This document shows positions 16,574 to 59,931 of a stretch of 64,000 nucleotides of DNA, one piece after another; within the stretch, counting starts at the first letter, position 1; the number at the start of each line of letters is the position of its first letter. Made by a program: the position numbers and the translations under genes. Where the stretch lies: assembly GCA_965113315.1 (NCBI GenBank), contig OZ220368.1; one strand, given 5' to 3'. Below the pieces are notes generated by a model. That model ran no database searches, was not told the DNA's origin, and saw only the letters and a program-made list of their open reading frames with translations. This DNA is from Podarcis vaucheri (taxonomy: Eukaryota).

Positions 16574-27611
<11,038 letters not shown>

Positions 27612-28627: not shown

Positions 28628-29348
28628 TCAACCATCAAAACTTAATGTGACCAGATATTGATACTTATGTCCTTGCTTTGGATATATACATTCATTTAAC
28701 TTAATTGTAGCAACCTAGGGATGTGCTCTTCCGTTTGGAAGAAAACCACCACCATCACCCCATATTTTTCACTTAATGAAAAGGAGATATAATAGCAGAT
28801 GTTTATTTAGAATTTTAAAAAAAATCAAGAATATGTAGGTACCTCTTTGGTTTTGTCTGTTGAAAATATAGAATGAAAGCCTCCAAATTCACTATATTTT
28901 GTTGTTAGGTATGTTTTACATTTTCTGCACCTGCCTTTGAATCAATCATTGTCTTCACATATCATGTGGGCTTCTTGCTAGGCCACATATTGAACTCACA
29001 GAATGGATTAATTCTGAACAGATTGTGGGGCTGTTCTTTTGCCACATTTCCAGAGCAATTAATTAAAACCACCAGATATGTTAACAGTCATATTCAGAAT
29101 CACATATTCAGTAACTTATTTACTGATCTTATCAAGTATGCAACCCATGGGTGCCAACTGCCTGAGACCCTGCATGGCTGAGCACCTACAAAATTCCCCA
29201 TATAGAGGACGGGAACCCACACATTTCAGTGCCAAGGCCATACACGCTGCATGGCACCCATGGCCACGGCACCAAGCTGGCACTCCTGTGCAACCAGTTA
29301 CATTGGTGCTGCTATTCTGAGATATACTCACTGCATTTAAATAATGAA

Positions 29349-29354
29349 TTTATT
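29349..29354 (-). promoter_or_regulatory. Candidate polyadenylation signal of OSC-like copy A
   Basis: AATAAA on the minus strand about 300 nt after the TGA. Confidence 0.45.
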
Positions 29355-29655
29355 GCGGGACTCTCCAAATAGCCAACACCTGTTGATTCATGCTTGGACA
29401 TTAGCTCATGTGATAGTTTAAGCTGTTCCTGCTCGCAAGACATGTTGTTAGCCTGGCAAGGAAAAGACAGTCTCTAAATTGTCAATGCGTCCTTCATTCT
29501 GATCTTATAGGAATGTTTCAAGTGATCTAATGTGGCATTATAATAGAAGAAAAACAGCACATGCCACACGGTGAATATCAACCAAGAGAGAAAAGCACTG
29601 GATGATGTTGAGAAGGATGAAACCCAAGCTCTCAGGAATGACAGTGCACCTCTGC

Positions 29656-32600
29656 TCAGCACCTTCCATTCTGACTCTGCTCTGAATGCACAGATCCATT
29701 CTTCATGAGTCCTTTAGCGACAGGGCTGCTGGGATATAGCCGGGTGAAGCGGGCAAGTGCAAAGATAGGGAAGATGATTCGGTAGGCATTGTAATGCAGA
29801 GTACCAGCTTTGTAGAATGCTGTAGCGATGTCACCCTGAGGGGAGGCAAGAGAGAAATTCCTGAACAACCGACATGCAGTCTTCTGCCCTGCCTTCATGG
29901 TGACTAAATTCCATTTGAGAACCCAGTTGTATGATCACTGCAACCTCTTTCAAGAGCAACTGTCACATACAATATAACCAAGCTTTTATTTGGCAAACAA
30001 GACTCTGGAAGCAGGAATCAGAGACCAGAGCCAATTAAAATGTAGGAAAGGCGACTAAAGACATTGTAGCATCTCAGGCAGAATATCCAAATGGTTCCAT
30101 GATTAAAAAATAAAATAATTAACTGGCAGTCTATGGCTTTTTAAAAGCACCCCTCTGACCTGCCACATCTAACAGTAGGGCCAGCTGTGTGCTGTGCTCT
30201 GATACCACACAAACTCAATCCTGATGGCACATTTTGATGCCACCGCAGTAACAAGACAGGTGCATGAATCACTTGGGTGCTTAAGGCAACAGAATACTTC
30301 CCACAGGAACATCAGAGTGTTCAATAGAGGGAGAATATGGGAAGCACTTGTAAGATCTCACCTGCCAATGCCACACAAGTGCCCATGTGTGTCCACAATA
30401 CATTGCAGCCATGTACGAGAAGCATCTTTATGACAACAACAATGCCAATGAGAGTACATTCTGATGCCTCATTCAGTAAGTGAGGGGTGGAAAACTTTTG
30501 GTCCTCCAAATATTGCTGAATTGCAACTCCCATCATCCATGTCTACTGCCTGTGTAGGCTGGAAGGCAACAACTTAGCCACCCCCACTCTCAGTACTTGG
30601 TGGAAAATGCTCTGCGTTCATTCATTTTACATATATTTGGAGAACATGATCCATTTCATAGCTGGCTAAAAAGGTTCTGTGAACCTTTAAATTATATTGC
30701 TATGAGGATATTTCATTAGGAAAAGAAATTAAAAGTATTAACACACCTGAGGCCACTCCCCAATCGATGTCTGTCTGTCAATCAAAACTTTTATTCCTCT
30801 TTCCAGAACCCGAACATCAGGATATCTGCAATGCCACAAGAATACTGGACATTAGTTTTGTTATCAGCACCCAGTGAGGGCTGGGAGCTGGAGCGAGGGG
30901 AAAGCCTATCAGTTTTCTTCTGGGAAGAAGCCTATATGACTACAATTTCTTTTTAAAAGAAAGAAACCCTCATGGGCTCACAGAAACTCAATGGATTCCC
31001 CTAGGGGAAAGACCTGTAAGTGTATGAGTCCTTCACACAAGTTCCAAAAAGTGAAGCAGCTAAAGAAATGAAATTTCTCCTCCTCTGCCCTTAAGACGGC
31101 CTTAACTGCCTCTTTGTTTGGCATTATTTCAATTGTTTGGACTAAAAAGCACCTGAGAACATCTACATACCAAGCTGCACAAAAATTCAGTCCTCTGTAA
31201 GTTTACAAAGCGTGTTCTCCTTCATGGAGAGCACGTGTTGCGGTGGGGGCTGCCAGGACACTCCAAAGTTGGGGGGCGGGCTAATTGATCGTTGGCCACT
31301 GATGCGATTGGGGCTTCCCTTGTTGTTGGGAAGAAGTTAATGTTGCCATTTATTGATTGACAGCCAGAAATAGTAAAACTCCTTGCACGAGGCTAGGGCT
31401 TCCTCTTTTCGCCCGTGCATCGGATCACCCGTCCCTCCCTTCCTAGAATAGGGTTGTTCACTTTGACCTTGCTATGCCTGTCATGGGGTCGTCTGCTTTG
31501 GAGCGGGGGCCTGGTAGGAATTTTGTCCATCTGGCTGATTGGCTGGGGCCATTTGGCTTTTGCCTACTGCGTAGTAAATCATCACAACTTGTAAGGTTCG
31601 CGGTTAGGCATTGGTTTATGGTTTGGTTGGTTGAGGGGCATGGATTGGCTGTGCCTGCCCCTCTAATGCTGCTGCTGCAAGGGATTCCGTTAAAGGAATT
31701 GGGAGCTAACTATTGCTTGTCCACTCTGTCAAGGGGGCTCGGGCCATAGCAATGAGCACCTGGTTGCATTTGGGGTGAGGGCAGGTTCCCTGCTCTGCGT
31801 AACCCCCAAGTGTATTCCCCCATTCTGACTTTCACGTCATGCGGAATGTCAGTCTGTCCCCCATGGTGGGGGCAGATAGTCATAACCAATGCCTACGCAA
31901 CCATTCACAAATTTGTATTTTAATAAAATTGTGGCCAAAATTATGCCAAAAATCTTAAACAAAAACTTCTGTGTGATGTGTGAGTTATTGGGGTGGACCT
32001 GTGGACCTTGACACACAAAAGCTAGCTATGCAGCATGAGGGACACAACATGCGAGAGGGAAGTCTGTGGCCTGTTTTTCCATAGGTTTTCAAAGGAGTAA
32101 TGGCACCCAACGAAAATAAGCACAACCAAAGATACTTCCAGAAGGAGGCGCCTCTTGTGATGGAGGATTAGGCTGCAAACACACCGTAGGTTTAGAGCAA
32201 ATTACTTCCTACAAGGAATCCTGGGAACTGCAGCTCTGTGAAGGATAAAGTACAGTTCCCAGGATTCTCTAGGGAAAGTCATGTGCTTTAAAGGTACACA
32301 GCTCACTGCTTTTGGGTGCTGGTAGCTCCATCTCCCACGGCTAGCCTGCTTCAGCCAACAGGTCCAGAACAAATTTATGCAAGTGATGCAATGCACTCAT
32401 AGTGAATGGATAATGTGTTTTTGTGAAAAAGACTTTGGAGGAAATGGACTTTGGGCAGATCAGCCCCCTCTTGCCAAACCCCATGAACTTAGAAGCATGT
32501 TTCTTTAGTATGCCTTAATTGGTTTGTCTAACTGCTGCAGAAAGAACTTGGGCAAAAGCAGACAGAAGCCTTTGCTAAGGTAGGTAACTGCCATCTTCTG

Positions 32601-35600
32601 TGCTTACCTAACAGCCATCAGCCCCAACAGAGCCCAGGAGGTTTGGTGGATCTGGGATACAGTGTGCTGAATATATTTGCGAAACCTGTAGGATTCAAAT
32701 TCCTCTCCCCAGCCACCGTCTTCCATTTGCTTGGAGACTAAGAATTCACAGGCTTTGGTCACTTCCTTGCATGCCTCCCTAGAAAATATGAGAGGAGAGA
32801 GAGAGAAAATAGCCCATGAGATGCCTCATTGGGTTTTGTTCCACTGTTGGCCTTGACTGCATCCAAAGAATCTCATGCACAATTACCTGCAGGTAAGGCC
32901 CACTAGGTGCAAGTAGATAAATAGGTACCACTTACCAGCGGGAAGGTAAACGGCGTTCCGTGTGCTGCGCTGGCTCGCCAGATGCAGCTTTGTCACGCTG
33001 GCCACGTGACCCGGAAGTGTCTCCGGACAGCGCTGGCCCCCGGCCTCTTGAGTGAGATGGGCGCACAAACCCCAGAGTCTGTCAAGACTGGCCCGTTCGG
33101 GCAGGGGTACCTTTACCTTTAAGGCCCACTAAGCTTAGCTGGATTTACTTCTGAGTAAGCATGCATAGGGGCTGGTGCTGTCAATATTATATGCACATGA
33201 CTCCCCTGCCTTTGATATTTTGGGTGGAGGAGCCTGACGGTCTCTCCACTTCTCTCTGAAGCTCAGCTCCATCAAGGGCTCCCAGCAGAGCAACATTCAT
33301 ACTAAACTTCTACCCGAAAGGCTGCTTACTCACCCACCACGGTAGATGTATCCCATACATGCAAATGCCTCTAGTCCAAACCAGGTGCCATATGTGAAGC
33401 ATACGCCCCATCGCCTGTCAGGGAGGAAAAACCCATCAGCCGCTGAATGAAAGATACTGAGACAAATGACAGACTACACCCTTTGAGTATGCCCTTCCAT
33501 TCACTGTTTGTTTCATAGAATCATAGAGGTGGAAGGGACCATGAGGGTCATCTAGTCCATGGGTAGGCAAACTAAGGCCCAGGAGTCGGATCCGGCCCAA
33601 TCGCCTTCTAAATCTGGCCCGCTGACAGTCCAGGAATCAGCATGTTTTTACATGAGTAGTATGTCTCCTTTTATTTAAAATGCATCTCTGGGTTATTTGT
33701 GGGGAATAGGAATTCGTTCCCCCCCACAAAAAAAAAATAGTCTGGCCCCCCACAAGTCTAGGGGACTGCTGAAAAAGTTTGCTGACCCCTGATCTAGTCC
33801 AACCCCCTACAATGTGAGAATCTTTTGAATTTCATGTTCCTAGTCAAAGTCAGAATCTCTTATTGCTATATAACTTGTTATTTAATTTTTTCCTGTTGTA
33901 CATTTAACTAGATCTAATTTATATAACCAGTTATTTTACTTAGTGGCTGTATATCTTATGGTGTGAATACTCCTGATGAATCATGTAGGGATCAGTATGG
34001 GATCAGTACATAGTGTTACCAACAGTACAGTATGTTTTCTCTCTAAGCCTAATGACAATGTGAAGGTTTGTGCAACTACCTAATGCAACTACATTGTTAA
34101 AAGACTGCTCAGTTGAACGGTCACAAAATCCTGCCTCAGAACAGACATAGATTTACTGAGGGTGGAAAAAGCTGCTGATGCCTAGATATTGGTACTACAT
34201 TTTAGGCTGCTGGTTTCAAATCACTCCTCAGACAGGCTAACATTAGTTATTTGTTGTGAAGAAGACCCCTAACAGCCCTCTTAGCTGTCACATGCTGAAT
34301 TTGCCTATTTCATGCATCAGGGTTAAATCTGATCCGGCTCTGTTTATTTTTAGGATCTCATTGCATCAAAAAAGAGGCTGCATACTCATCCTTTCATTCC
34401 CGTGCATAGAGTTAGGCTGTAGCATTCCCCTCCACAGCGGGAAGGCAATTCTGTGCATTTATGAGAAATCCCGTTCCTTGCTTGTGTTTTACCCTCCATC
34501 CCAAAATAGTTTCATATTTGTAGATCATACCAAAAGAGCAAGCTGTCGCCAGTGCAAATGCAGATAAACAGGACTGTGCCTGTGATTGGTCACCTCAAGA
34601 CACAGGTCAACCAAACTGACCACACACCCCCAGGCCACCAAATGAAAGTTCTATGCTTGTCTGCCCCCATCTGGACTTCTGGACAGAATCTTCTACCCAA
34701 ACCCCTTTACCAGGGTTCCCTGAGATAAGGCACCAAATGAAGGGGGTGATGCACCATTTTACCCCCCAAGAAATAGACCAAAAATTCATCCCATGCCTTA
34801 TCCACTGAAAGTTGTGACAATTGCTATGAGAAGGCAAAACCACCAATTGGGCCCAATTTGTCTGCATGCAAATTCCTTCCTGGTCCTGAAAACAGTGACC
34901 GATTATCTCCACAGCAAGGTCCTCCATACACATTGCCCACTTACCTCAAAGGCAATGCCAATTTTTAGGTGGGTGGGATGATCAGCTGCCAACTATGTTG
35001 CTGGCTCCCAGTACAGATGGCTTAAATACTACAGCGGAGGACTGGAGTGAACCCTCAGTATCTATCTCTGCTGCTGAAGCCCCACTCCACTATCAGGTCA
35101 CTATTGGCCAATTTAAAATTTATATTTTAAAAATCATCCCCTCTGGTCAGTTGAAGAAAACAATTGGCCATGAAGGACAAAGGACCTGCCCCATCCACGA
35201 CCCCGAGGGGTTGCACTAGGCCACAATCATAGGCCGTATCAATATAGGACAGCTGACTGTCAACTACACTACAAGTGGTCAGCTGATCCACAGCACTTTG
35301 TCTACTAGGATGACACACCAGCTGAAACAATGGAACAGTGTGTTGCATTAGCTAGTTCTCTCCTTTTTATCTGTCAAACTGTTGTGTAGGAAAGGCATTC
35401 AAAAGGTGAAGGTTTCCACAGCTCAGTCAGCAAAGTCATTCTTTGAGAACACTATGTATGCATTCAGAAACTCCGCCGACCAGTGCCACAGTCAAGTTCA
35501 GTGTGGGATATTTGTAAGCCACTCACCCTAACCAGGAGCCATCAGCTTTCTGCATATTACGACAAAACTGCAAAGCCTTACTTAGCGTATCACTGGGAAG

Positions 35601-38600
35601 AAAAACAAAGGAGTCTTCTTACATTTCAAGCTAACCAGGTTCTGGATAAGACAATCATTAAGGCAAGCTCCGTGTAACAATGGCATTCAACGGCCTAAAG
35701 AAGCCTTCCACTTTTTCAGAACTTGGACCCACCCAAAACATTCATTTAGTGGCCCACTTCTTAATGTTTTAACAATGTTAGTGTTGCTATTGTGACCCAC
35801 CTTAGAGCAGGCTGTGATCCAGTAGTGGTCCTACCAGCCTCCCAAGTGATGGCTAATTAAGATCAAGAGTGTTCCTCATCAGTCTTTGTTTAAACCACCA
35901 GCAACAACTTTACATACTGTATCACTTCTATGTTGGAAATAACATGTATGCTGTAAGTTACATGTACATAAACATTTTCGGAGGGGTAGCTGTGCTGGTT
36001 TGCTGCAGCAAAAACAACTAAGTGTCATGTGCCACCTTAAAGCCTAACACATTTTATTGTGGCAAAAGTTTTTATGGACTGGAGTCCACTTCAGATGTAC
36101 CGTGTGATCATTAGTTGCCAGGGATGTAAGCAGATGGAGGTATATGTATATATTTTAAATAATGACTGGAGTTGCAATCAAATACAATAAAAAATAAAAA
36201 ATCAGTCTTTGCAATTCCTGAGCTCTTAACATGGAATATTCTATTAGAATACAGAATTCAAGACTATAGAATATGAATTCATGCTGTAACAATAATATCC
36301 TTCTCAGCTTCTGGGGATTTCCCCCCATACCTTTACCTGATTTCATCTTCCCGGTGATTTGGGAATCTTTTCCCAAAATGTTTCAATCCCTGCATTATGG
36401 ATGAAGTACATTCTGTATAGGTGTGGTCGACCATACAGTCAGCTGAAAATCATAAAGTGAAGTATTTTACTTTATGTTTCAAGGTGGCTTACAGATTTAT
36501 AAAATGCTAGCATCCCCGAAAATATCCTTTAAAAGGGAGCCAAAACCTAGCAGTTTAAACAGCAGGAGGGAAAAAAACCTCTATAAAAACAACAGTCAAA
36601 ATGTCAGCCCTTTGCCCACCAAAAGCTTATCAGGAAAACCGGCCATGCATTTTGTGCAGAGGACTATCAGTGAGATCCTTCTTTGTCTAGATCAGGGGTG
36701 GGCATCCTGCATCCAGAGGGTCACATACAGGCCTCAGCCTATTTTTAGAAGCGCAGGAAGAGCCCAAAGGGAGAGGAAGATGGTGGTGGAGGTGAAACAG
36801 ATGGGGTGATGTGAGAGGAAATCCCTTTGCAAGCAAACAGTTGAGAACCCTGCAAGAATTATTGGTCTCTCCCCTAGCAGCCTGTTGGGCACAGAGCAAA
36901 AGAGAGAGAGGAAGAGAAGAGGGTGTGGCAAAAGGAGGGAGAGATGGCTCTGGCCACACTCCCTGCTGGCATGCAGTTCACAGCAGAATGCCCTCAAGGG
37001 AAAGTGTCCCCTCCCTGAAGGCTGTGAGGTGGTGGGGTCATCCTGGGAGAGGTGGCTTCAGAGTTTTGACAGTCAGACGATGTGTGATGTGAGGAGACCA
37101 TTGATTTCTAGCTGACTTTGTGTACCTGTTTATCATTTTGGTTCCATGGTCAGAGCCACATGGACTGTCCGTATCACACCATCTTTGTTCTGCCTGTTCC
37201 AGAAACCAACCACCAGCCTGCCTTAGAACATCTCCCCTATCAGCACCTACAGTGGACTCTGACAACGTGAACAATTGCCAAGCTCCTATGGCCTAAACAA
37301 ACTGCCTCCAAACATGTGACTTCAGTTCATGGTCTCTATCCCCAAAACTATGAAATTCACAAAAGATTCCCATTTAAGTTGTTCTGATATCAAGGCTGTG
37401 TTCTTACCATACAACTCTGTGCAGTTCATTATCTCCAGTAGCCTACTCCCTCGTCTGGTTTCATAAGAAGCAAAACCACCATCAGAATTTCGCATGCTCA
37501 GAATCTGCAAAAAAGTACAAGTGGGATGGGGGGGGCGGGGAGAGGGTTTAAGAACAGGCATGGTGTTTCTTGTCCTACTTGCAGAGGAACATGGCTGGTC
37601 GCTCCTGTCCAGCCCCACCAGCCACTCCTGTGCCCCTTCCTCACTTGCCTTTTTTATAAACTAAAAAACCCCAAATGTTATGGAGGAGATCCTCCAAATT
37701 CTTCATCATTTTAGTTGCCCCTTTCTATGCAAGAATTCCCATGATTCATGTGGCCATTTTCTGTTTTTCAAGTCTGGATAGATTCCTGCTGTTTCAGACT
37801 TTGCCACAAGCACCAAATGCAATTCAGGCGCCACTCCACCCGGCTACAATGGTGTGTAAAATCAGAGTCTCTGCCCTTGACAAACCAACCTCTTTATTTT
37901 AAGTGGAACTAAACAAAAGGAGAGTGGCTCGCCGTACATATGTAGTCGTGCCAGTTGGCCCTCTCTCACCATATTAGGCCAATGGAGAACTCAGTGGATG
38001 GGGAGATTCTGTTGTTCCAGCAAACCCTAGAAAGTGTCATTGCTCCTCATGACTATGATGAGGATTCCAGGACAAAATTTGCTAATTTGCACTGTATCTC
38101 CAAATTACTACTGTAGGGACAGAGATTAACAGATTATGTATTTGACTTCAAATTGTAAGTAAACTGTAATGATGCAATAGCTACTTTCTAATGAACAAGA
38201 TCAATGGTCCATCTGTTGTCAATCCTAAAGCCCAGTGAGCTTTCGATCCAGCTTACTGAGGGAGATTGCTCTCAGTCCTGCTACCTTACAACCCTTTACC
38301 TGAGCTTAAGGAACTCAAACTTCAAGACTGATCATCCTTCACAGAGGATAAACTGCTGCCACAGGGACACTTCCACCAATTATCTTAGCCCACAAAACCA
38401 ATACGGTCCCACAAAACCAATATTCTCCTCAGCACTATTACTGAATGCTAGATGACCTCAGTCTTCCCACAATAGCTTCCTCCTGCCTGCTTCCCATTTT
38501 CTCTTCTGAGCTTTCCCCCTTCTCACCACATTGACAGCATCAAAGAGGCGCTGAGGTGCCACATGATCTTCTATGAAGGGGCATTTTTCCTCCAGTAGCA

Positions 38601-41600
38601 TCAATGTCCTTATGGCCTCAGCAGTGCAATCACCGACCATCCAGTCATTCTCTCGATTGCTGAAGGGGAATCCACCCTGGATATTGAAGAAAATATATTA
38701 GGACTCCTTGGGCAGCCATCAGTGTAGAATAATCTCCTCCCAAAAAGATCCCAATAAAGCAACCAGGAATTTGACAGGTGATCCACATTTCTCTTTCAGG
38801 ATACTAGACTAGATGGGTCCTGGCCTAAACCAGCAGGCTCCTTAGGTTCTCAGAATTAACACTTAAAGACTCTTTTTTTTTGCTGGCTATGTTTCACACA
38901 GACAGGACACAATTCTGGATGTACCTTGTTCATCTGGCGATAATATCTCTGGTAGTTAGGTGGGTTATCTACAATCTGAAAAACAGATTAGCAGCATATT
39001 AATAAAAGACAATCAGAATATATTTATAACCAGAGAAAGCTAGTGTGGCATAACAGTTTGAGTGATGGTCCTGAGAGACCAGGATGCCAATCTCTACTTC
39101 CTCTCAGCCTAAAATTCCTCATAGGGTTGTTGTGTGGATTCAGTAAGGAGGAAGAAAAGTTCAGTAAGCTGCTTGGAGAAAAAGATGGGCTATGCAATAA
39201 TTAATAAACAATAGAAAATAAATTAACTCAGTCAGAAATATGGTCTGCAATTTAGAAGACAGAATATGGCTACAACCTGATACAATGGCAGCACATAGGG
39301 TTGTGTTCAGTGCCAGCGCTACTCAAAGCAGACTCACTGAAATTTATGAACTCAAATTGGGCATGTTTATTAACCTAAATGGGTTTGCTGTGAATAGGAT
39401 TCATACTGTGTACAACCCATAGTGTCGGTTGAGGTAAATTGCAGTGGATATACAAGGTTTTACACAGGACTGAAGCCACACTATAGAACCGAATTGACAT
39501 TACAGTCAAGGATCACATGGGCTTCAGATTAAAAACCTATTATTCTATAGTCCTGCCATGACACATTATTCAGCTGAATGAATCTCATGCGATCAAGAGG
39601 CAGCTGGACCACACTCTGGCTCTGCTTCCAAGGTTGCACAACATTTCATGACCACAACACCCACACATTAAGCTTTGCCTATGCAGGCATCCATGTCTAA
39701 ATGCACGGATATCAGAGGCAGAGCTGGGGGAAACCATACAACCTTGGAAGCTGCCCTTCAACGTCTGGGTCAAGTAGGCCCATATGCCTTTGATACCCTA
39801 ATAGCTCCTTCTCATGATGAGTAACACATGAAAGATGAGTAACACGTGTTACTTTGCAAAAAGAGACAAGCGTTTCCCTCCTGATTCTTTTGCTGAGACA
39901 GCTGAAAGCTGTATTGATTGATTCCCTGTGTATGTTATTCCAAGGATCAGTGCTTTACCTGAGAGGCTTTCAAGAATTCGTGGGCTTTTTTCAGACAGGA
40001 TGCATAGTCAGGATTGTTCTGAACCCCAGCCTAGAAAAAGACAGAAGTTATGCTTAAGGATTCTGACCCAGGAAAGTCACAGAGAAAATCTTAGACACTT
40101 ACATAAAAGCATCACTTTGGACAGCCACAAAAATAAATGCAAGTTCTTCAGGGATAACTTCAGTGCTACAAAAGGAATACTCAGTGTGTGGATTTCTGGA
40201 CCTCATGTCCTAAGAATCACCTGGAGAACATGCCTTTCTTGGTTAACCATGACAGGCATACGAGGTGTTCGGATCTTGTAATGCATGTGCTTTGGTTAAA
40301 TAATGAACACACACCATCTACATGCCAGTTCATTCATCTAAAATATATATGTAAATGGAAATTATTGTGGAAAGAACAAAAGCAGCAGATTTGACAATAT
40401 AAAATGTTACCTCCAAGAAGCCTTGAATGGCAAATGATGTATCCCAGGTCTGTGATCCCATGACCTGATATAAAGAAAGGAAGAAGAGTTTTGTCCATTA
40501 GATCAGGGGTGGAGAACCATTGGCCTGGGAGCTGAATGCAGTCCTCTCTAACCAGCCCTTTGGATGCTTCCCCAGTCATGTCCACTTCCCGGCCTACACC
40601 CTCCCCTACTGGCCTTGCTCTGCATACTCCTTAAGGGCTGGAATGTCTCATGGAATGGTGATAAGCCCTCCTGCTTAACTGAGTAGAAGATGGGGAAAGA
40701 TGTGGGTGGACTGGTGTGGAAGCCTCTGAAATTTGTGTGGTCACTATTGTGTGGGAGTGGTGAACAATTGGTTTCCTCCCATTTTTATTTTATAATACGC
40801 TATTTTAAAAGAAAGCAAGAGCACCGGGAGTAAATCAGTAATTAAAGGGCTCTTCTGCACCTTCGCTTGGCCCTTGTTTTGATTGTATTGTGTACTGATC
40901 AATTCCTCTTGTTCTCTCAGTTAAGCAGCATGTGTTTTGGGATTCTTGGCACATCAGATAAGATCTGAATCAGCATTTTAAAAAGGTGCTACATGACCTG
41001 GTATTATCTTACATCTTATCTCCTAGCCCTAACCCTGGGGTGAAGCTACACTTTATGCAGGAGAGCCATGACTGGATCTCCTGATATTTTGACATTTTGA
41101 TATTTACTTCAATGAAGCTGGTACTGTCAGGCAAGCAGAAGACAGCTGAGCTTCAGAATCACCAAAGCAATGCAAATTGCAGCCCATAATATTTCCCAAC
41201 ATATTGGTTCACACTATTGTACCTTTATTAACATACCATCTTGTCCCATCCTGCAGAGATATAAAAAGCAGAGATTATAGCAGACACAAGACCATGTAGT
41301 TACCTATCTGCATTGCATAATAGGAGACCCAAATCATCCTGATATCTCTTCCATACAACACCATGAGTGAGGCATGGGTGTGCATGAGATCTGCCTATAC
41401 TGCAAATAAGGATATGTTCACATCACTGGCTTAAAACGCAGCAAGGTCATTTTATCCCACTGCACTGCAAGCCACATTTGCACAGGGTTGTTCAAATCAG
41501 ATAGGGGGCAGAGATATCTTTATAGAGTGTGTATGCCCTTTCTGCCCCTCCCCCTGCAACCCCCTGGAACTCCTAGTGATGAAACTGCCATCTGAGCATC

Positions 41601-44600: not shown

Positions 44601-47600
44601 TATTGCACTTAAAACACACTTAAAACGTTTTATTTGCAGCTGTATAGCTGAGTCCATAGTCTCTTATATATACAGATTGAAACCCTGTTATACCCTATTA
44701 CCAAAAAAACAAAAACAAAAACATGATAGACAAGAATTCACTGGTCACAGAGACCAAATGGTCTCAGCATTTCTTTACACACGTAGTTCCTGAAACCTAG
44801 TATCTTCTGCAAGCTTCTGGTTACTTCTTTCTTAAAACCAGTGCTTCTTTTCTGGGGGATGCAGGGGTGCACATACCCCTAAACATTTTGTGAATCTAAG
44901 TTTGGCCTCATTGAGGGGAAGTATTTTAATATGAGTCAGAAAATGAGAGTACCCCTAAACAATTTTTTAGGGGGGAAAGCACTGCTTAAAGCAGTCCTAA
45001 AATCATTAAAATCATTTCCCAGGCCTATGGGCTGCAGTTTGAGCTCCATTTGCGGCTTGCAGTTTTTGCTCCTTAACATGCAGAATATGCCACACCCATG
45101 ACATGTGTCTGCTCACCAATCAGGCAGAGGTATGGCAACCAGCCATACCTCACTCTGACTCATGTGCAGATGTTCTTCATCTGAGTAACCTCTACATGAA
45201 ATCCTGTGAGGAACAGGTTCTGTCACAAACAGACATGAAGTAGTGAAGATTAATATGGATGTCTCCATTTCCAAGTCATTGCTATTTAGTGAAGGATCCG
45301 CCTACTGTGTAATACTGTTGCAGCAGAGACCTTTCTTTGGCAATTCATGATCGGCAGGGTGGGTTGGGAATGAGTAAACTTTAGGACACATACCATAGCT
45401 CAGGAAACAGTGTATTCATTCCCTCCCAGCTGTACAAATTCATAGTAGCCAGCCAAACTTTGCCCAGATGAGGGATTCCAAGAGCACCACCTGGAAAGAG
45501 AATTAACAAGTTTTTCGTTTCCATAGACTGAAGGGGCAAAGTCAAAGAAACCTTCAGTGAAAACCGAGATATGTTTATAGCCTTGTGAGATTGAAAGCTC
45601 AACTTGTTTAGAGTTTAGTGATGCAGTGCCTCAGAATTCCACTAGAGTGCTGTGCCGCAGCCTCCTTTTGATTGGTTGTGGTTACAGGTAGCCAGAGGGA
45701 GGTGGTGACAGCACTTGGCGTAGGCACGAGAAAAAAGCAGCTAAGGAATTGGCGTTCTGGCATTCAGCTGAATAGTTGTATAGCTCCTGAGCTGTGTGTT
45801 AAATCCACTCTGTAATCAGAAAAAAAGTCTCTGAACTTAGTTTGAGAGACAGTGATTAGTGTATTTTAAGAGTATATAGACAAGAGAAAACTGGGAAGCT
45901 GAATTGGGAACAGCACATGTGAGAGGACATATTATTTGGATTCTCAATTCAGTAAGAAGGGGAGAGATCTTCTTGAAAGAGAAGAATCCCAAACCAGTCG
46001 GACGGGTGAGCTGATCCTCTGGTCTGTTATACTAGAGGAGCCTCATAAGTAAGATTTATAGAAGGTTGGGAAACTGACAGAAAGTACCACCCTGAATTAC
46101 ACCCATGAATTCATGGAGATCAGGCCGGTTTTTTACCAGGTGGATATATGAAAGATAATTTACAGAACATTATTGATGTGATTGAATATCTAGAAGTTAG
46201 AACTGATAAGCAAGCAGCTTTGATTTTTATTGATGCAGAGAAAGCTTTTGATAATATATCATGGACATATATGAAAAAAGTAATTGAAATAATGAATTTT
46301 GGACAGGTCTTTGCTAACGGTATTGAGGCAATTTATTCTGAGCAACAGGCTAAATTAATAGTAAACAATACAGTTACTGAAAAATGTAATATAACAAAGG
46401 GAACAAGACAGGGGTGTCCATTGTCACCCCTGTTGTTTATTCTGGTGTTAGAGACTTTGTTGAGAAAGATAAGAACAGATGAAGAAATCAAAGTCATCGC
46501 AATTGGAACTAGGTCATACAAACTTAAGGCATTTGCAGATGATTTAGTAATAACGGTAGAAAATCCTTTGGAATTGGTACCAAAAGCATTAGAGAAATTG
46601 AATGAATTTGGCCAAGTGGCAGGTTTTAAGTTAAATAAAGGAAAATCAAAAATGCTGGTTAAAAATATGACAGAACAAAATAAAAATGAACTTGAACAAA
46701 TAACAGAATTAAAGATAAAAAAGTAAAATATTTAGGGGTCGGTTAACATCAAAAAAATATAAACTTATTTCAAGATAATTATGTAAAAATGTGGAATGAT
46801 ATGTCGAGTAAATGTCAAGTACATGTTGGAAATGTAAAGATAAAGAAGGCACATTTTTCCATATGTGGTGCACCTGCAAATTAGCAAAAGCATATTGGGA
46901 AATTATATATAATGAATTAAAGAAAATGTTTAAAATAACTTTTATTTAAAAACTAGAGTCTTTTCTATTAGGTATAATAGGAGAAGAAATCCCAAAGGAG
47001 AAAAAGGTCTTATTTATGCATGCGACAACAGCAGTGAGAATATTATATGCCCAGGGATGGAAGGAAGAAAGAACCTCATCAAAAGAAGAATGGATAACGA
47101 AATTAATGGACTATGCCGAAGTGGCGAAATTGACTGGGAAGATCAGACACCAAGAGGACAAAATATTTTTTTAAAGATGGACTAATTTTGTAGAATATCT
47201 GAAGGAGCATTGTAAACACATAAAAACTTTAGCAGGCTTGGAATAGCACTGGTGAGATAATTAGGGTAAATTTTGTAATAAGGGAAATGAATAAATTAGA
47301 GAAATATATAAAGATGCAGAAAAGATACCGTATTTTTCGCTCTATAACACGCACCCGACCATAACACGCACGTAGTTTTTAGGGGAGGAAAATCCGTAGG
47401 CATGCCACCCGTAGGCATTTCCTCCATAACACACACAGACATTTCCCCTTACTTTCTAGGAGGAAAAAAGTGAGTGTTATGGTGCAAAAAATACGGTAAG
47501 TGGTAATGATGGGAAACCGGGGAGGAGGATGGGGGCAAGTCTGGGGGTTGAGAACCTCCAAAAGGTAGTGTTTTGTTGTGTTGATATGAATGTAAAANNN

Positions 47601-50600
47601 NNNNNNNNNNNNNNNNNNNNNNNNNNNNNNNNNNNNNNNNNNNNNNNNNNNNNNNNNNNNNNNNNNNNNNNNNNNNNNNNNNNNNNNNNNNNNNNNNNNN
47701 NNNNNNNNNNNNNNNNNNNNNNNNNNNNNNNNNNNNNNNNNNNNNNNNNNNNNNNNNAGAACCAAAGTATTACGTAAGTCCTAAGCTGTAACACCTAGGC
47801 AATTAGCTGAAGAAATTGAAGTGAAAATAAGCTGTGTTTTCCACCTTGTTTAGATGCCTGTAACAACAACTGAATTTAATATATTTATATATGTTAACTG
47901 CCCTGTCATACCCTCATTGCCTGGCTTGGCCACACTCCACACATTGGAGGGCAAATCTAGCAGCAGCTGCACAGCTGTCAGCTACATTCAGTGTAGAGTG
48001 TAGAGTTTCTGAACAGGTTTGAGCCAAAGGGTCCCCTCTTCATTTCTATATTGGACAGAGTGAATGCCCTGATCATCCTGGAACCATATGCATCTGTTTC
48101 TCAGACTGTATCCAGTGTATATTGTATACCACTGTATACAGTGGTACCTCAGGTTATATACGCTTCAGGTTACATACGCTTCAGGTTACACACTCCGCTA
48201 ACCCAGAAATAGTGCTTCAGGTTAAGAACTTTGCTTCAGGATGAGAACAGAAATCGTGCTCCGGCGGCGCAGTGGCAGCAGGAGGCCCCATTGGCTAAAG
48301 TGGTGCTTCAGGTTAAGAACAGTTTCAGGTTAAGTACAGACCTCCCAAATGAATTAAGTACTTAACCAGAGGTACCACTGTACCTCCCACTGTGCCATTA
48401 AACCCTATGTATGAATGCTACTGCAATAAAAAGGCTACAACTCACCTCATTCTTTGTATTTATTAAATAATATTTTATCACTGCATTTGTGCTTTACGGA
48501 GTGGCACAAAGGGCCCGTGTCCAGACCCTCCCAAGAGTTCCCAATATAAATTTTGGAGGAGGAAAAAAACAGGAGGGAAGATATGACCAGCATCTTCTGT
48601 TTGATCATAGAAATGGTGTCAATGTGCCAGTCTATGGAGATGTCTAAAAGGACCAAGGAAGGAAGGAAGGAAGGAAGGAAGGAAGGAAGGAAGGAAGGAA
48701 GGAAAAGAGACAGAATAGAGAGGTGCTCCCAAATAACTGTACAACACCAGGACCCCCAAGTTTTGCCTGGGTACTACGCTCAAGCAAAATGGATTGATTC
48801 AGCCCTGCCAGAGATTTCTGCCTTACCTTTCTTGTGGAGATTTATCCGAGCCCGCACTACATCTGGATGGTCGGGCCCAAGTCCAAGGATTCGCATAGCT
48901 ATGTAGCTAAAGGTTGTGCCAAATACTGTTGACTGTTCTGTAAGATGGCTACCATAAAGAGAGATCAAAGAGCCATTAGAAAGTACACCAGAGTGTTTGC
49001 ATGTCTAAGAAGCTGTTTGAATTGTTTAGTTTCCATTCTTCTGGTGCATTAACTTAAATTCAAAAACTTCTCTGAGAACTTGTCAGAATACAGTGGTACC
49101 TTGGGTTACATACACTTCAGGTTACATACGCTTCAGGTTACAGACTCCGCTATCCCAGAAATAGTGCTTCAGGTTAAGAACTTTGCTTCAGGATAAGAAC
49201 AGAAATTGTGCTCCGGTGGCGTGGCAGCAGTGGGAAGCCCCATTAGCTAAAGTGGTGCTTCAGGTTAAGAACAGTTTCAGGTTAAGAACGGACCTCCAGA
49301 ATGAATTAAGTCCTTAACCCGAGGTACCACTGTACTCCAAGAATACCCAGTTAGCTAGCCATTAGCCGGGATACCACAGAATACCTACTTTTGTTTTCTA
49401 TTTCCTTTTTTTAAAAAAAGTAATGCCTTAATGAAGGACATGTAGTGCTTTGAAATGTTTCTTTTCAGGAGACAGCATGGGCATGAGAGCAACTCATACA
49501 GCCAGAATACCAGTTGAAATTCCATTCCAGATAAATAAAGCTGATCTTGGTCAATGAGAATGTAGATTCTGAATTCAGATCTGAATTCAGATTCAAAGCT
49601 GAGTCAAACCCCGAACCATTTTGTGGTTTGCTATTGGTTTGACAGGATACATTTGGATGGAGGCAACCTGGCCTCACCAGACCATTATCAATTGTAATAC
49701 TTCCTAGAGATGGTGCTTTTTAAAGAAAAGAGTGATGTCGGATATCATTGTGGTGATCACACAGGGTCCCCGGACGTTTCACCATCTCTTGATCCCTGTG
49801 CCACCACTATATTTCCCGCTGCCACCACCCAGGCTCTACCTCGTACAACCCTGAGTCCAGTCAGGGTTAAATTGGAACATAAACTTTTGTTTATTTATTG
49901 CAGTTTAACAAGCGTGTGGTTTAATAAACGGTATCAGTCAATTACAAACATGGGGTGCCTATCCAGACCTATAACTTCCACTACATGCTCTCACTCACTA
50001 AACCACCTCTCAGATATTTACTTGTCTTCCTAGCCCCTAAGTATTCCTGACTCAGCTTATTTCGTTACACTAACTCAACCTACCCACAAACTCTAGCCCA
50101 ATTCACTCCCACTCCAACCAACCACCCAACTCCCAACAAACTTCCTCCTTCGCCCCTCCCAGAGCTGGTTTTATAGTCCCTATGACTCCACCCCCCTGGG
50201 TCCTGATTGGGTAACCTGTTTAACTATTTCACCTCCAGCACTCTCTCATATGTTAATGTCACAATCATGTCTTCATTATTGTTGCCTCTCTCCACCCCTC
50301 ATGCCACAATTCTATTTTTCTCTGCCACAGCTGGGCAGCTTCAGTACATGCTAAGGCCAGCTGGCATTCTAGTCATCTGCCCTGCTGCCCAGTCCACATG
50401 GTGAGTATTGCTCACAGTCAAAAGACAGCAGAATGCAGAAGTGATTTAAAGAAGCCTTCATGGGGGAATTGCATCATGGACCAGCCCAAGACAAAGATAT
50501 GCAGAATTAGAACATCACACCCTCCTTGGACTACTCACAAACTCCAGCCCCCATCTGGAAGCTGTTTTGAGAGGATGTAGCGCAGGAGCTCTCTCTCGGC

Positions 50601-53600
50601 CTCTTCTGGCAGTGAGATCTTGGCAGCATAGCATGACATCAAAAAACCTGTTTGATTTTTCAAAAAAGATAACAATGTATAATACTTGACTATCTCAATT
50701 TTGGTTTGATTTGTTTGGATACCACCTGATTGGATATCAAAATGTAATTTGTGCTTTTGTACCCCTGATAGGTAGTGTGTGGTTTTTTCCTATATTGAAA
50801 CAGAAGAAAAAGGTCAAACATAACAATATTTAATTATCTAGCAAGTTTAGGCAAAAGATCATCACTTCTGCCCCCTTACTAGAAGGTGCATGATTTCATT
50901 CTGGACTATTCAATGTTGGATGCTGCTTACCATTGAACAACAGGCAGCAGGATTCTCAGTGAATTTTCTTCAAACTGCTGGGGTCTTACCCAATCCTATC
51001 AGGTGATGCCAGAGGACAAGCCTAGGACCTTCTGCATGCGGGACTGAACTGAATTCAGCTTCACTCACTTCATTTCAAAGTTTGGTTCACTTTTTCGCAT
51101 CGGTTTGTGATTTTTATTTTTATTTTAGTTCTCATGAAAATTCACCATCCCAATATACACATTTTTGCAAAGCTATTATTGTTGTTTCTGCTGTTGTTGT
51201 TACTCTAGTATATGCCATTCTGCACATTATGTGACTGGAGACCTGCACTACAAAATTCAGTGAATAGCAAATGTCAGTGGATGCCTGTGTTTCAGTTCTC
51301 ATGCTGTTTCTGAAAGGTGAGAGCTCTTTGTTCCTTTCATACTAAAGGCTTACAGGTCCATTATTCTAGATTATTCTGACTTCATTGGAAAGAGTGATAG
51401 CTTTTGCTTTGTTGCAGAAAATCCCAAGTTGGATCCTGGGCATAGACCTGGGGAAATCACAGAGGGTTGCTACCAGTTCAGTGTTGAGATAGATGTGCCA
51501 GTGGGATAAGGCAGCTTCCTATGTTATTATGATGAACAGCTTTGTACAGGCAAAAGAAAGACAAATGATTTAAGCAGTTTCAGAGGTTTCTCAAAATGTC
51601 CACCTATTTGTGCCTAGCCTATCTGGTAAAAAAAGAAATAGATTTATAGAAAATATACAGGGAGGCCCGTTAATGTATTTGTGGTAAGTCTGTTAGCGTT
51701 CCTATACCTGGTCCAAGAGCAACGACACCAGAGCACTCCATGGCCCAATGGCCATCTTCCACTTGCAGGCCAGAGAAGAATTTAATCGCTTTCTGGACTG
51801 CTTCCTGGGCCGTATGGGCTTTGGGCAAGTCTGGAAAGAACTTACTCTGTAAAACAAAATGGGGGAAATAAGAGAAATGTACAGAAATTAAAAAGGCTGG
51901 CTACAGTACAAAGTATGCATAGTGTTAAATGTCCTGCTACATATAATGCAACTGTTGGGTCATTTAAAAATAAATATAGCAGAGAAAGGTGGTCAGGATA
52001 GGGACCATGGCAGATGGGGAAGTGTCATTTAATACTTCCCCTCTTAGCAGTAGTCTCAATGAAATCCCCCCGCCCCTCGCCAGCTGCTATTTGTATGTGC
52101 CTGGAGACACCAGCAGGCGGGGAAAGGCAAAACTCCTTCCTTCCCACCCAACACAATCCCCATCCCGACTGGGTCCTCATGTAGTTGAACAACAGTCATG
52201 TTAAATACAAAAAGTTGTTTAATGTAATTTATGGTTGGCTCCTGAGAGACCATTCCAAAATAAAGTTTTACAACCACACCGCAATTCCGCAAGTGAAATC
52301 AACATCTGCAAACATCTCACAATGCTTCACATCAGTGGGAGATCACAGCTGTTCAGAAATCCAGGAGTCTTTCTCTAAACAAACTGCATAGAGGGTGCAT
52401 GTGCCTCAGTATTTTCACACACACAAAGTCCCTCATGCAAATGCATCATATGTGCATCATGGAAATGATTATCAGTATACTGGAGAATAATCATTGAGAG
52501 CAAGAAAGTGGCTTTCTAGAGAACATCTCTGAGCTCTTAGATCAGAGAACCATAGAATATAAGGGACCAGAAGATCATGTAGCCCAATTCCCTCTCCACA
52601 AGTAAGAACCCTACACTGACTCTGGCTTGCAGATGAACTCACTCAGCTTTCTAGGTATCAAGCACAGAGCAGCTACTTTGTAGAAAGTGATAACTAAGTT
52701 ATGTATTTCCTGTAGATTGTCATATTCATCTTGCAGGCTTGTCTTTTTTCAAGTAGGGTTTCATATTCAACCCTGACATTATCAAGTTGCAGTTGTAGAG
52801 CACCAAGTGGCAGGCGGTTGGGGGAGATGACCCTCATGATCCCTTCCACAGTTCTATGATTGCAATAACCAAGCTTCCTGTGCTCCTAACTGAGGTGTCA
52901 GAAGATGAGAAGCCAAAAGAAAAATGACCCAGCCCTTGGGAAACTGCTGCTAGGCAGGGCCAAGCCAGCAGTCCTCATGCCCTGGGCTCCTTTTGTAGCC
53001 TTTCCGTGTTGTACCATCTGTTATCATTAAGCCACTTACAATGTCCAGCCCTAAAGTGTAAGCCTCGAGTGCATTCTGTTCACGGACACATTCTTCACTG
53101 TCTGCCACGTAGTACCATCTATGCCGCCCTTCCACGGAGCTGAATCGCCAGCGTGTAAGGTCAGTTTTGGGTTCTATTTCATGTGCACCTTTTCTTCTGC
53201 GCAGACATCTACCAAAGAACACCGGGGGGGGGGAGAGTTTGAAACATGCAGGCAGATTTTCAGTTATTCTACCACAGGAAGTTATTCTGAACCCCTTTCT
53301 GTGGTCCTTCCAGCCAGAAGTGAGGGACAGACTTGTCTATTCATTTCAGTGGGTCTATTCATGACTAATTTGTCCACTGGTTTCAGTGAATCTACTCTGA
53401 GTATGGCGTATTCATATACCACCCATAGATCTTTTGCTTTTTCTAACTAGCTCATTATGGAAACACTTCCTATTCTCTACAACCATATTTTTGTCCCAGT
53501 TGTTCAGAGCAGAAAGCGGTTGACAGGGATGGCTTATGAGTTTCTTTTATATCCTGCTTCATTCCAATGACAGAGCTCATTTTAGGGTTCTTAAGTATGG

Positions 53601-54510
53601 AAGTCCAAGACTGATCAACAGGACTTATTCTCAGATAATTTGGCATAGGACCACAGCTTTAATTCCCAATCTGTCCAAATATGTTCATTTCCCCAAGTCT
53701 GCTCCTAAAACTGCCCCCCCCCATCTTCTCTTAGTTATTTTACAATATCTCTTCTAACTTGGAAATGATGAATTTTCACGTGTCTGTCTTTCACATTATC
53801 TCTTTGGTGGAATCTCTTGCATACCTTTCCTGGAGAAAAGCCCCAGTGAAACAGTGGTACTTACTTCTGAGTAAGCATGCATAGGATTGTCCTAGTAGAC
53901 TATTCCATGTTTAAAATTTGGGGGTGATTTTCTCGTAATTGGCCTATTATAGGCCTCCACTAATTGAACTGTTTTAGACATCAATAATTGACAAATAATA
54001 AGGACCACTGATTCAGTTCCAAAGAGAGTTAATATGTATGTACTGTGCTGCACTCTGCTTTAGTAATTAATTTATATGCAGCCAGATATTTTGCCCATCT
54101 TCTAGTTATTCCCATCATTTATCAAATTGGGTTTGCTAAGTTTAACATCATCAACACATCTAGTTTCATGTCATTTCTCAACTGCAAATCTTTTTCTTCA
54201 AAGTTATTATAACCAATGAAACTTCTTTACACCAATTTTCATTTCTGTTCCTAATCACAATACAAAACTTCTGTTCTATTTTCCACAGTATTTCTGAATG
54301 AAGAAAAGCCAAAATGCTGCCTTTTTATTCCTTAATACATCAGGTTAATTGCCCTTCCCATCTTATTTCTGTGAACTTCTCCTGTAATAAAGCTTGCTTA
54401 ATCAATATGAATTAAGTCAAGCAACTGGCACACTTTGTTATTTTATTTAACCATCATCCTAATTCAAAGCATATAGATTGCACACAATGTACTTACGTCC
54501 CATCAGACAT
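29656..54510 (-). CDS. Divergent 2,3-oxidosqualene cyclase / lanosterol synthase-like protein (copy A), 22 exons, 748 aa, open frame
   Basis: Exons in transcription order: 54497-54510, 53040-53208, 51708-51846, 50539-50647, 48827-48948, 45394-45490, 43991-44126, 42972-43080, 42169-42287, 41794-41891, 41223-41250, 40411-40464, 39959-40030, 38925-38975, 38527-38676, 37408-37504, 36337-36442, 35527-35592, 33334-33414, 32608-32778, 30747-30825, 29656-29835. Total 2247 nt, all phases compatible, no internal stop. Contains DCTAE ([10 protein letters not shown]), [23 protein letters not shown] and QW repeats (QVEDGHW, QLPDGGW, QKADGSW, QMEDGGW). Symbol withheld because it looks like an LSS paralogue, not the orthologue. 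Confidence 0.93.
31236..32020 (+). mobile_element. Probable solo LTR
   Basis: Begins TGTTG, GC-richer than its flanks, AATAAA at 31922; 3' terminus decayed and TSD not clear. Confidence 0.5.
32906..33120 (+). mobile_element. Sauria SINE, 5'-truncated, with 11-bp TSD
   Basis: Ends ggggtacctttaccttt; flanked by AAGGCCCACTA at 32895-32905 and 33121-33131. Confidence 0.85.
33560..33790. mobile_element. hAT-like non-autonomous element nested in a CR1 3' end
   Basis: gggtaggcaaact...agtttgctgacccctg termini with TCTAGTCC repeated on both sides. Confidence 0.65.
44839..44984. mobile_element. hAT-type MITE (same family as 9862-10007)
   Basis: CAGTGCT...AGCACTG termini; TSD CTTAAAAC/CTTAAAGC. Confidence 0.82.
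46115..47325 (+). mobile_element. L1/Tx1-clade LINE fragment (RT domain plus C-terminus, internally deleted)
   Basis: ORF 46148-46726 with [21 protein letters not shown] and AFADD RT motifs, followed by the CWKC..HMWCTC zinc-knuckle region. Confidence 0.9.
47328..47496. mobile_element. Tc2/pogo-like MITE
   Basis: TA-CCGTATTTTT...AAAAATACGG-TA. Confidence 0.8.
47598..47757. other. Assembly gap (160 N) in intron 5 of OSC-like copy A
   Basis: Run of N. Confidence 1.
48139..48380. mobile_element. Tc1/mariner (Tigger-like) MITE
   Basis: TIRs CAGTGGTACCT / AGGTACCACTG, TA target duplication, internal cttcaggtta repeats. Confidence 0.85.
48656..48704. repeat. (GGAA)n microsatellite
   Basis: Direct observation; unexpanded at the homologous copy B site (about 59135). 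Confidence 0.95.
49091..49332. mobile_element. Tc1/mariner (Tigger-like) MITE, second copy
   Basis: Near-identical to 48139-48380 and in the same orientation; TA TSD. Confidence 0.85.
49749..50263 (-). mobile_element. Solo LTR with 5-bp TSD
   Basis: TGTG...CACA termini with ATCAT on both sides; the empty site with a single ATCAT is present in copy B (about 60000); AATAAA on the minus strand. Confidence 0.8.
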
Positions 54511-58784: not shown

Positions 58785-59000
58785 CCGTATTTTTCGCTCC
58801 ACAAGACAGACCTGACCATAAGACACACCTAGTTTTTAGAGGAGGAAAACAAGAAAAAAAATATTCTGAACGAAACAGTGGATGTATGATTTTTGTGGTT
58901 CATGCTGTGGCCACAGACATGTGATTTGATGGTGAGTTTGGGGTGACCCAATGCAAAAATCCTGAGGATCCATGTGGATCCGTGCTTTGTAACCACATTT
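58785..59000. mobile_element. Truncated Tc2/pogo-like element at the copy B deletion junction
   Basis: Left TIR TA-CCGTATTTTTCGCTC as at 47328; no right TIR seen. Confidence 0.65.
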
Positions 59001-59568
59001 TTACAGCTCTGCCCTGTCACACCCTCGTTGCCTGGCCAAACCCCACACATTGGAGGGCAAATCTAGTAGCAGTTGCACAGCCTTCAACTATGCTCAGTGT
59101 ATTGTTTCTATGGAGATTTCAAAAAGGGCCCACAAAGGAAGGAAAGAAGGAAGAACAGAGAGGTGTTCCCGAATAACTGTACAACATCAGAACCCCCCAG
59201 CTTTTTCGGGCCCTGCTCTCCAGCATATGGATTGACCAAGCCCTGCCGGAGATTTCTGCCTTACCTTTCTTGTGGAGATTTATCTGAGCCCGCACTACAT
59301 CTGGATGGTCAGGCCCAAGTCCAAGGATTTGCATAGCTATATAGCTGAAGGTTGTGCCAAATACTGTTGACTGTTCTGTAAGATGGCTACCATAAAGAGA
59401 GATCAAAGAGCCATTAGAAAATAGACCAGTGGCTCCAGATGTCGAGAAATCTCTTTGAATTGTTTAGTTTCCATTCTTCTGATATATTACCTTAATGCAA
59501 ACTGCGAACCATTTTGTGGTTTGCTATTGGTTTGACAGGATACATTTGGATGATGCCAGCCTGGCTTC

Positions 59569-59899: not shown

Positions 59900-59929
<30 letters not shown>
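59569..59929 (+). mobile_element. L2-clade LINE 3' end with (ATT)n tail
   Basis: Peptide RTLRSS..LLAVP..RAFSVVAPALWNTLP..FRRHLKAALF; absent at the homologous site in copy A (about 49675). Confidence 0.85.

Positions 59930-59931
<2 letters not shown>

Follow-up and report, generated by a model that had tools for sequence, protein, structure and literature searches.

Does a lizard genome hold a second oxidosqualene cyclase (OSC) besides the lanosterol synthase (LSS) of the sterol pathway? Sterol textbooks treat animals apart from sea cucumbers as possessing a single OSC. A survey published in 2022 takes the same view: outside the sea cucumbers, an animal would have one OSC, and this enzyme is devoted to lanosterol (PMC9236903). 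The question is raised by an OSC-like gene in a 64,000-nucleotide (nt) stretch of Podarcis vaucheri DNA (contig OZ220368.1 of assembly GCA_965113315.1), hereafter called the window. We propose, with a probability of about 0.55, that this gene is an old, lineage-restricted LSS paralogue lying beside TTC22, and that it would encode an active cyclase with products other than, or besides, lanosterol. Human residue numbering is used throughout.

An intact OSC-like gene

Motif and tblastn scans of the window first located an OSC gene on the minus strand. Modelling with a turtle LSS (P0210) by tblastn and splice refinement gives 22 coding exons, running from an ATG at position 54510 to a stop codon at 29656. 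The coding sequence (2247 nt, 748 residues) exhibits no internal stop or frameshift. An initial annotation of this DNA had claimed a complete 22-exon open frame, the end points of which are exactly reproduced by this model. The first coding exon (14 nt) was placed by eye and the 28-nt microexon (41250-41223) by a directed scan. Twenty introns are of the GT-AG type and one is GC-AG, all 42 splice signals being usable. The predicted N-terminus MSDGTCLRRR corresponds to MTEGTCLRRR of LSS, and exon 22 provides a 16-residue C-terminal extension. The single non-GT donor (CAG/GCAAGG, 43985-43990, minus strand) belongs to intron 7; the junctions matched by the spliced contigs described below lie between exons 11 and 18.

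On sequence criteria, the predicted protein belongs to the oxidosqualene/squalene cyclase superfamily and carries the DCTAE-type catalytic motif. Exon 20 matches PF13243 (SQHop_cyclase_C) with 49.1 bits against a cut-off of 26.1. Of ten exons searched singly, nine match TIGR01787, TIGR03463 or both; on TIGR03463, the model for 2,3-oxidosqualene cyclases, seven exons match collinearly. Exon 15 aligns to residues 439-490 of the human OSC structure 1W6K, its GDCTAE motif coinciding with 1W6K residues 454-459, and the whole protein can be aligned from end to end with 141 jawed-vertebrate LSS sequences. The conserved QW repeats that had been claimed for the gene are found as four strict Q-x(2-5)-G-x-W motifs, at residues 136, 571, 623 and 681.

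Residues were compared in an alignment with the 141 full-length jawed-vertebrate LSS sequences, a column being called invariant when at least 98% conserved. The numbering was transferred through a Saimiri LSS (P0255), residues 1-732 of which align to 1W6K without a gap. In agreement with the initial annotation, the 1W6K-numbered alignment confirms that the initiation residues D455, C456, C533, W387, F444 and W581 are kept, as are H232, Y503, F696, Y704 and Y707. V453 is kept as well. The deprotonating pair H232/Y503 and F444 are thus all three retained.

The replacements at LSS-conserved positions listed in the initial annotation also hold, every one of them, against the 141 sequences. The loop 96-103 exhibits G96M, D97E, Y98C, G99S, P101V, L102V and F103A. 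Further changes are S191H, W192L, F195V, C233A, Y237T, S334N, I335S, G336S, the deletion of one residue at G380 with T381V, and C449N, G450D, T502S, F521Y, I524C, G694T, V695A, N697Y and I702L. Residue 454 is a glycine in the window protein, an alanine in 134 of the 141 LSS and a serine in human 1W6K. Altogether 69 of the 281 LSS-invariant columns (25%) are changed. T381, C449 and V453 are the lanosterol-type second-sphere positions reported in the mutagenesis literature; V453 alone of this set is kept, position 381 exhibiting valine next to the deletion at 380 and position 449 asparagine. The channel constriction of human OSC is formed by Tyr237, Cys233 and Ile524 (PMC3141018).

Locus, rate and age of the duplication

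Could this gene be the sole LSS of the genome, that is, a relocated and fast-evolving orthologue? We consider this the least credible of all readings and reject it. The neighbouring gene is TTC22, recognized by an Atlas score of 0.96 with 203 of 256 features common to TTC22 clusters, by weak TPR matches and by a 284-residue open stretch starting MEEAEVDID. In human, TTC22 is located on 1p32 and LSS beside MCM3AP on 21q22.3. Since the neighbour is TTC22, the locus is not the LSS locus. Moreover, the 90%-identity cluster containing the LSS of Zootoca vivipara also holds the canonical LSS of Podarcis muralis, P. raffonei, P. lilfordi and Lacerta agilis, and canonical LSS sequences are found in six further squamate families. 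The presence of LSS in three Podarcis species therefore indicates that it coexists with the OSC-like gene at least at the level of the genus. With only 59% identity to the P. muralis LSS, the window protein is a paralogue and not the only LSS, as the initial annotation had suspected.

The OSC-like protein exhibits 54-61% identity to each of the 141 jawed-vertebrate LSS, the values for turtle, lizard, paddlefish and coelacanth all being about 60%, whereas jawed-vertebrate LSS are 74-83% identical to turtle LSS. Tajima relative rate tests with five outgroups count about 185 unique changes in the OSC-like protein versus about 46 in Podarcis LSS (p from 1e-18 to 1e-21). The OSC-like protein has thus accumulated changes at about four times the rate of the canonical LSS in related lizards.

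With three non-vertebrate cyclases for reference, a phylogenetic analysis under the posterior mean site frequency (PMSF) model nests the OSC-like protein within gnathostome LSS (support 98/93), at the end of a branch of length 0.98, the median being 0.13. With TTC22 as its neighbour and a branch of this length, the gene exhibits neither the orthologous position nor the ordinary branch length of an LSS orthologue; a phylogeny had been proposed earlier as a check on exactly this point, and the ordinary LSS branch was not seen. In the same tree the six canonical squamate LSS form a clade (100/100) without the OSC-like protein. A pairing of the OSC-like protein with a turtle LSS-like protein, obtained in a quick tree, was lost in the careful tree search.

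At five of seven columns diagnostic of squamate LSS, the OSC-like protein exhibits the non-squamate state. These missing signatures, besides speaking against a sole LSS, argue that the duplication is old; it would predate most of the squamate LSS stem and is probably older than crown squamates. Among representative sequences, a search with exon 15 found no closer relative; its matches, at most 67% identical, were mostly fragments the size of an exon. A homology search with a 128-residue stretch around exon 2 gave no match, its length window leaving longer relatives outside its scope.

Several turtle LSS sequences (P0218, P0220 and P0268) are named "lanosterol synthase-like", and the branch of Emydura P0268 is somewhat long (0.22). 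Turtles may have more than one LSS locus.

Transcription and selection

A search of sequencing runs with the gene stretch retrieved 17 runs, which belong to eight studies and six coded organisms. In DNA-like runs 49-85% of the sampled words are present, in 11 small runs 6-10%, the latter proportion being close to what exons contribute to the stretch. We aligned four small runs to positions 35500-41300; X1, X3 and X6, representing three studies and two related organisms, yielded spliced contigs, one of which (X3) is 2588 nt long. These contigs confirm seven junctions from exon 11 to exon 18 with base precision and contain no indels. The skipped segments all end in CT..AC, that is, GT..AG on the gene strand, and the introns are covered by nothing other than repeat matches of 33-35 nt. 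Given seven consecutive exact intron removals, we take the runs to be RNA. Close relatives of the window species thus transcribe and splice the OSC-like gene as modelled. Per exon, 0-12% of positions differ between contigs and window; the source of the contigs is therefore related organisms or a sister copy.

Among 17 listed differences between contigs and window, eight are nonsynonymous and nine synonymous, for 500 nonsynonymous and 127 synonymous sites. The resulting omega of about 0.23 (binomial P = 0.003 against neutrality), although calculated from 17 variants only, suggests that the gene is under purifying selection. Consistently, the protein matches the LSS consensus more often the better a column is conserved, with 30% agreement where columns are variable and 75% where conservation is 98% or more.

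The contigs also exhibit local differences beside the catalytic aspartate. Codon 454 (38634) encodes serine in the X1 and X3 transcripts, as in human LSS, and glycine in the window; codon 452 (38638) encodes isoleucine in X1, X3 and X6, again as in human LSS, and methionine in the window. Part of the remodelling next to the catalytic aspartate is therefore recent and species-specific.

These data bear on a less favourable reading, in which the gene is catalytically dead or decaying, either as a transcribed relic or as a protein reused in a non-enzymatic role such as lipid binding. The very long branch would be expected of such a gene, the structurally important residues P101, G99, G336 and W192 are lost, and the neighbouring copy described below is plainly dead; birth and death do occur in this family. 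However, a decaying gene would hardly preserve 2247 nt in 22 exons with neither stop nor frameshift and with 42 usable splice signals, nor would it be matched by related transcripts free of indels with the omega given above. The eleven residues confirmed above from D455 to Y707 are all kept although 40% of all residues are changed, for which the chance is about 0.04 at the 75% retention of invariant sites. We thus regard loss of catalysis as improbable. The earlier claim of a functional enzyme gene, as opposed to a decaying copy, stands to this extent: the intact frame, the spliced transcripts of relatives, the synonymous bias and the retention rising with conservation all describe what looks like a working gene.

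A truncated tandem copy and the assembly gap

The stretch 58622-63446, upstream of the intact gene (copy A), is 68-90% identical to positions 47325-52608 of copy A. In this second copy (copy B), the homologue of intron 5 is joined directly to the homologue of the 3' flank; exons 6-22 are therefore gone. The pN/pS ratio between the two copies is about 0.5 (258 sites). Copy B is thus a truncated pseudogene, left over from a tandem duplication whose period is about 30 kb. The plus-strand open reading frame (ORF) of the insert that splits its exon 4 (60343-60900) presumably resembles the tail of a BovB/RTE long interspersed nuclear element (LINE); a Pfam search with this ORF gave no match.

Copy B also helps to assess the only run of N in the window, a 160-nt assembly gap in intron 5 of copy A. 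One may suspect an assembly chimera, in which exons 1-5 and exons 6-22 come from different copies linked by the gap and the open frame is a scaffolding artefact. The gap does lie within about 150 nt of the point where the similarity between the copies first appeared to stop, in a region that harbours a tandem duplicate and LINE fragments. However, copy B runs collinearly over the gap, its homologues of A 47898-47994 and A 47325-47392 following each other in the same order and orientation, and at the exon 5/6 join the LSS protein alignment continues with no residue missing. The two gap flanks therefore belong together, and the reading frame is independent of the gap. Further, the runs X12 and X13 hold 0.85 and 0.84, respectively, of the sampled words from 28800-38700, and the 2588-nt spliced X3 contig extends 1574 nt in the 5' direction past exon 11, exons 1-10 requiring 1112 nt. 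With collinear copy B and this long contig at hand, we reject the chimera, which we judge highly improbable.

A reverse transcriptase fragment is found in the same intron (46109-46723, plus strand; Pfam RVT_1, E-value = 6.6e-25), about 900 nt from the gap, and appears L1-like by eye. Such an L1-type fragment and the BovB-like one in copy B are in keeping with a squamate genome.

Proposed function

The roles of the residues discussed here are those reportedly established for the human and yeast enzymes by Thoma et al. 2004 and by ERG7 mutagenesis work. Because D455/C456/C533, W387, F444, W581, F696 and H232/Y503 are all kept, the OSC-like protein is most likely still an active cyclase, which would open 2,3-oxidosqualene or a close epoxide relative and form a protosteryl-type cation. 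In this scheme, the epoxide would be protonated by Asp455 with Cys456 and Cys533 as partners, the cation would be stabilised by W387, F444, W581 and F696, and H232/Y503 would act as the base. Around this conserved core, the loop 96-103 that enforces the B-ring boat appears rebuilt, including Y98C; the gate of the substrate channel would be lined with smaller residues (C233A, Y237T, I524C, W192L); the second-sphere positions 380/381 and 449/450 beside the deprotonation site are altered, and the 694-702 wall would be rebuilt. With the loop, gate, second sphere and wall so modified, substrate entry and the folding or termination of the reaction would probably differ from those of LSS. A changed product spectrum or substrate tolerance in an active cyclase is the likeliest outcome suggested by these replacements.

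A more specific version is possible, and we advance it tentatively, giving it somewhat less than an even chance. Squamates would have a product- or substrate-switched second OSC making a non-lanosterol triterpenoid, for example a double-bond isomer of lanosterol or a compound with incomplete cyclisation; its use would be peculiar to the lineage, for instance in lipids of the skin, of a gland or for signalling.

Several points weigh against our reading of the gene as an old paralogue with altered products. The residues most directly tied to lanosterol formation (H232, Y503, F444 and V453) are unchanged. An asparagine at the 449-equivalent occurs in plant lanosterol synthases. F444, the residue of the sea cucumber product switch (PMC9236903), is among those unchanged in the OSC-like protein. 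Yeast mutants at the Tyr237-equivalent keep about half of their activity with alanine (PMC3141018), so that single changes of such kind need not alter the product. Among 17 cavity-contact residues taken from a 1W6K docking paper, six (35%) are changed, compared with the 25% of all invariant columns; the cavity seems remodelled, but not strikingly beyond the rest of the protein, the changes not being clearly focused there. General acceleration thus explains much of the pattern. As to the age of the duplication, approximately unbiased (AU) tests reject neither the placement of the OSC-like protein as sister of squamate LSS (p = 0.46) nor its placement outside all LSS (p = 0.38). Finally, the label of the runs as RNA is a guess of the search, for which the splicing seen in the contigs is the sole backing. 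The transcripts were obtained from related organisms, not demonstrably from the window species, and another copy of the family could be their origin; the omega estimate has a small basis.

There is a serious rival: the gene may encode a second lanosterol synthase whose product is unchanged, the copy being subfunctionalised for a tissue or stage and having drifted at many non-essential positions under relaxed constraint. This reading would account for the retention of the full catalytic set, including H232/Y503, F444 and V453, and for cavity contacts not clearly more altered than other invariant sites, and it agrees with the half activity kept by the yeast Y239A channel mutant. Femoral secretions of lacertids contain squalene and lanost-8-en-3-ol (PMC5817153); although this is context and not evidence for a role in the gland, an extra supply of lanosterol is conceivable. 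On the other hand, 69 positions fixed in 141 LSS over about 450 million years are altered, including Y98, W192, the 380/381 deletion and the loop 96-103. Where a gene has long kept a fourfold rate and is still under purifying selection, a change of function is a better explanation than redundancy. We therefore consider a same-product enzyme unlikely, while deserving more weight than a dead one, and retain an active cyclase with altered products as our preferred reading.

Features of the window

Coordinates are collected in Table 1. Apart from the genes discussed above, three open stretches at 4408-9081 (minus strand) each exhibit an LGPGTY-type motif reminiscent of STPGR/SHIPPO repeats. LEXM is presumably the gene to be expected beside TTC22. 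The assignment of these ORFs to LEXM was not confirmed: Pfam gave no match for them, and an Atlas score of 0.76 to a SHIPPO-rpt cluster is a lead only.

Table 1. Features of the window in order of position along the minus-strand gene, followed by its surroundings
Feature	Position	Strand	Details
Exon 1, coding part	54497-54510	-	14 nt; MSDG and first 2 nt of Thr5; donor GTAAGT
Exon 2	53040-53208	-	169 nt; tblastn, splice refinement
Exon 3	51708-51846	-	139 nt; changed 96-103 loop, GDYGGPLF to MECSGVVA, including Y98C
Exon 4	50539-50647	-	109 nt; first QW repeat
Exon 5	48827-48948	-	122 nt; TIGR03463 positions 66-102; Pfam SQHop_cyclase_N E-value 2.4e-4, below cut-off
Exon 6	45394-45490	-	97 nt; S191H, W192L, F195V
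Exon 7	43991-44126	-	136 nt; H232 kept, C233A, Y237T; TIGR03463 positions 138-182
Exon 8	42972-43080	-	109 nt
Exon 9	42169-42287	-	119 nt; ISIGP to TNSSP
Exon 10	41794-41891	-	98 nt
Exon 11	41223-41250	-	28-nt microexon; completes W370, then MGQDGMLIK; junction to exon 12 in X3 and X6 contigs
Exon 12	40411-40464	-	54 nt; one residue lost at G380, T381V, W387 kept; both junctions in X3 and X6
Exon 13	39959-40030	-	72 nt; junctions matched by spliced contigs
Exon 14	38925-38975	-	51 nt; junctions in X1, X3 and X6
Exon 15	38527-38676	-	150 nt; GDCTAE with D455, C456; F444, V453 kept; C449N, G450D; junctions in contigs
Exon 16	37408-37504	-	97 nt; Y503 kept, T502S; spliced-contig support
Exon 17	36337-36442	-	106 nt; F521Y, I524C, C533 kept; spliced-contig support
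Exon 18	35527-35592	-	66 nt; QW repeat; spliced-contig support
Exon 19	33334-33414	-	81 nt; W581 kept; loose contig ends at 35526 run into exon 19 sequence
Exon 20	32608-32778	-	171 nt; QW repeat; SQHop_cyclase_C 49.1 bits; TIGR01787 E-value 4.8e-20
Exon 21	30747-30825	-	79 nt; QW repeat
Exon 22	29656-29835	-	180 nt including TGA 29658-29656; F696, Y704, Y707 kept; G694T, V695A, N697Y, I702L
First AATAAA past the stop	29349-29354	-	candidate polyadenylation signal, motif match only
Assembly gap	47598-47757		160 N, non-coding; in intron 5 (48826-45491)
Copy B, exon 3 homologue	62555-62693	-	open frame, AG/GT kept, Cys at position 98 (MECSGVFSL)
Copy B, insert splitting exon 4	60343-60900		about 558 nt; plus-strand ORF
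Copy B, exon 5 homologue	59265-59386	-	open frame, splice signals kept, 2 amino-acid differences
Copy B, deletion joint	58622-58849	-	homologue of A 47325-47392 abuts homologue of A 28637-28791 (3' flank) at 58782-58784
TTC22	16430-25039	+	first long coding exon in ORF 16430-17281; TPR exon in ORF 24752-25039

Significance and comparison with known systems

A literature search for a second OSC in vertebrates or squamates found none, and the main text of a 2026 review of 348 characterised OSCs mentions neither vertebrates nor reptiles. Public annotations probably list the gene already, with an automatically assigned name of the type "lanosterol synthase-like". If the proposed change of function is true, the gene would represent the first vertebrate OSC with a switched product or substrate. 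A second vertebrate OSC that is intact, transcribed and maintained by selection would open vertebrate triterpenoid chemistry to direct test. The gene would also amount to a "mutant" of the drug target LSS, made by nature and altered at many sites, and its product could explain unidentified steroid-like compounds in lizard secretions. Even if only lanosterol is made, it would still be a rare duplicated core enzyme of the sterol pathway, evolving fourfold faster under continuing constraint.

Compared with vertebrate LSS (EC 5.4.99.7; 1W6K), the window protein is collinear over its full length and shares the DCTAE motif, D455/C456/C533, H232/Y503, W387, F444, W581, F696 and the QW repeats. It differs by the deletion of G380, by one residue inserted near position 42 and by the 16-residue extension at its C-terminus. 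Its identity to these enzymes is 54-61%, whereas LSS sequences are at least 74% identical to turtle LSS; 69 of 281 invariant positions are changed, the gene lies at the TTC22 locus, and its rate is about fourfold.

Plant OSCs (cycloartenol, lanosterol and amyrin synthases) resemble this case in that duplication was followed by cavity remodelling at the equivalents of positions 381, 449 and 453. The plant families are large and biochemically characterised, whereas the window offers one intact vertebrate gene known from its sequence.

The parkeol and lanostadienol synthases of sea cucumbers (PMC9236903) likewise derive from an LSS by duplication and divergence, occur as tandem copies and keep H232 and Y503. 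In sea cucumbers, one residue (444, phenylalanine to leucine or glutamine) accounts for the switch, and the canonical LSS is lost (PMC9236903). In contrast, the window gene exhibits an unchanged F444 together with many other changes, and the canonical LSS persists in related lizards.

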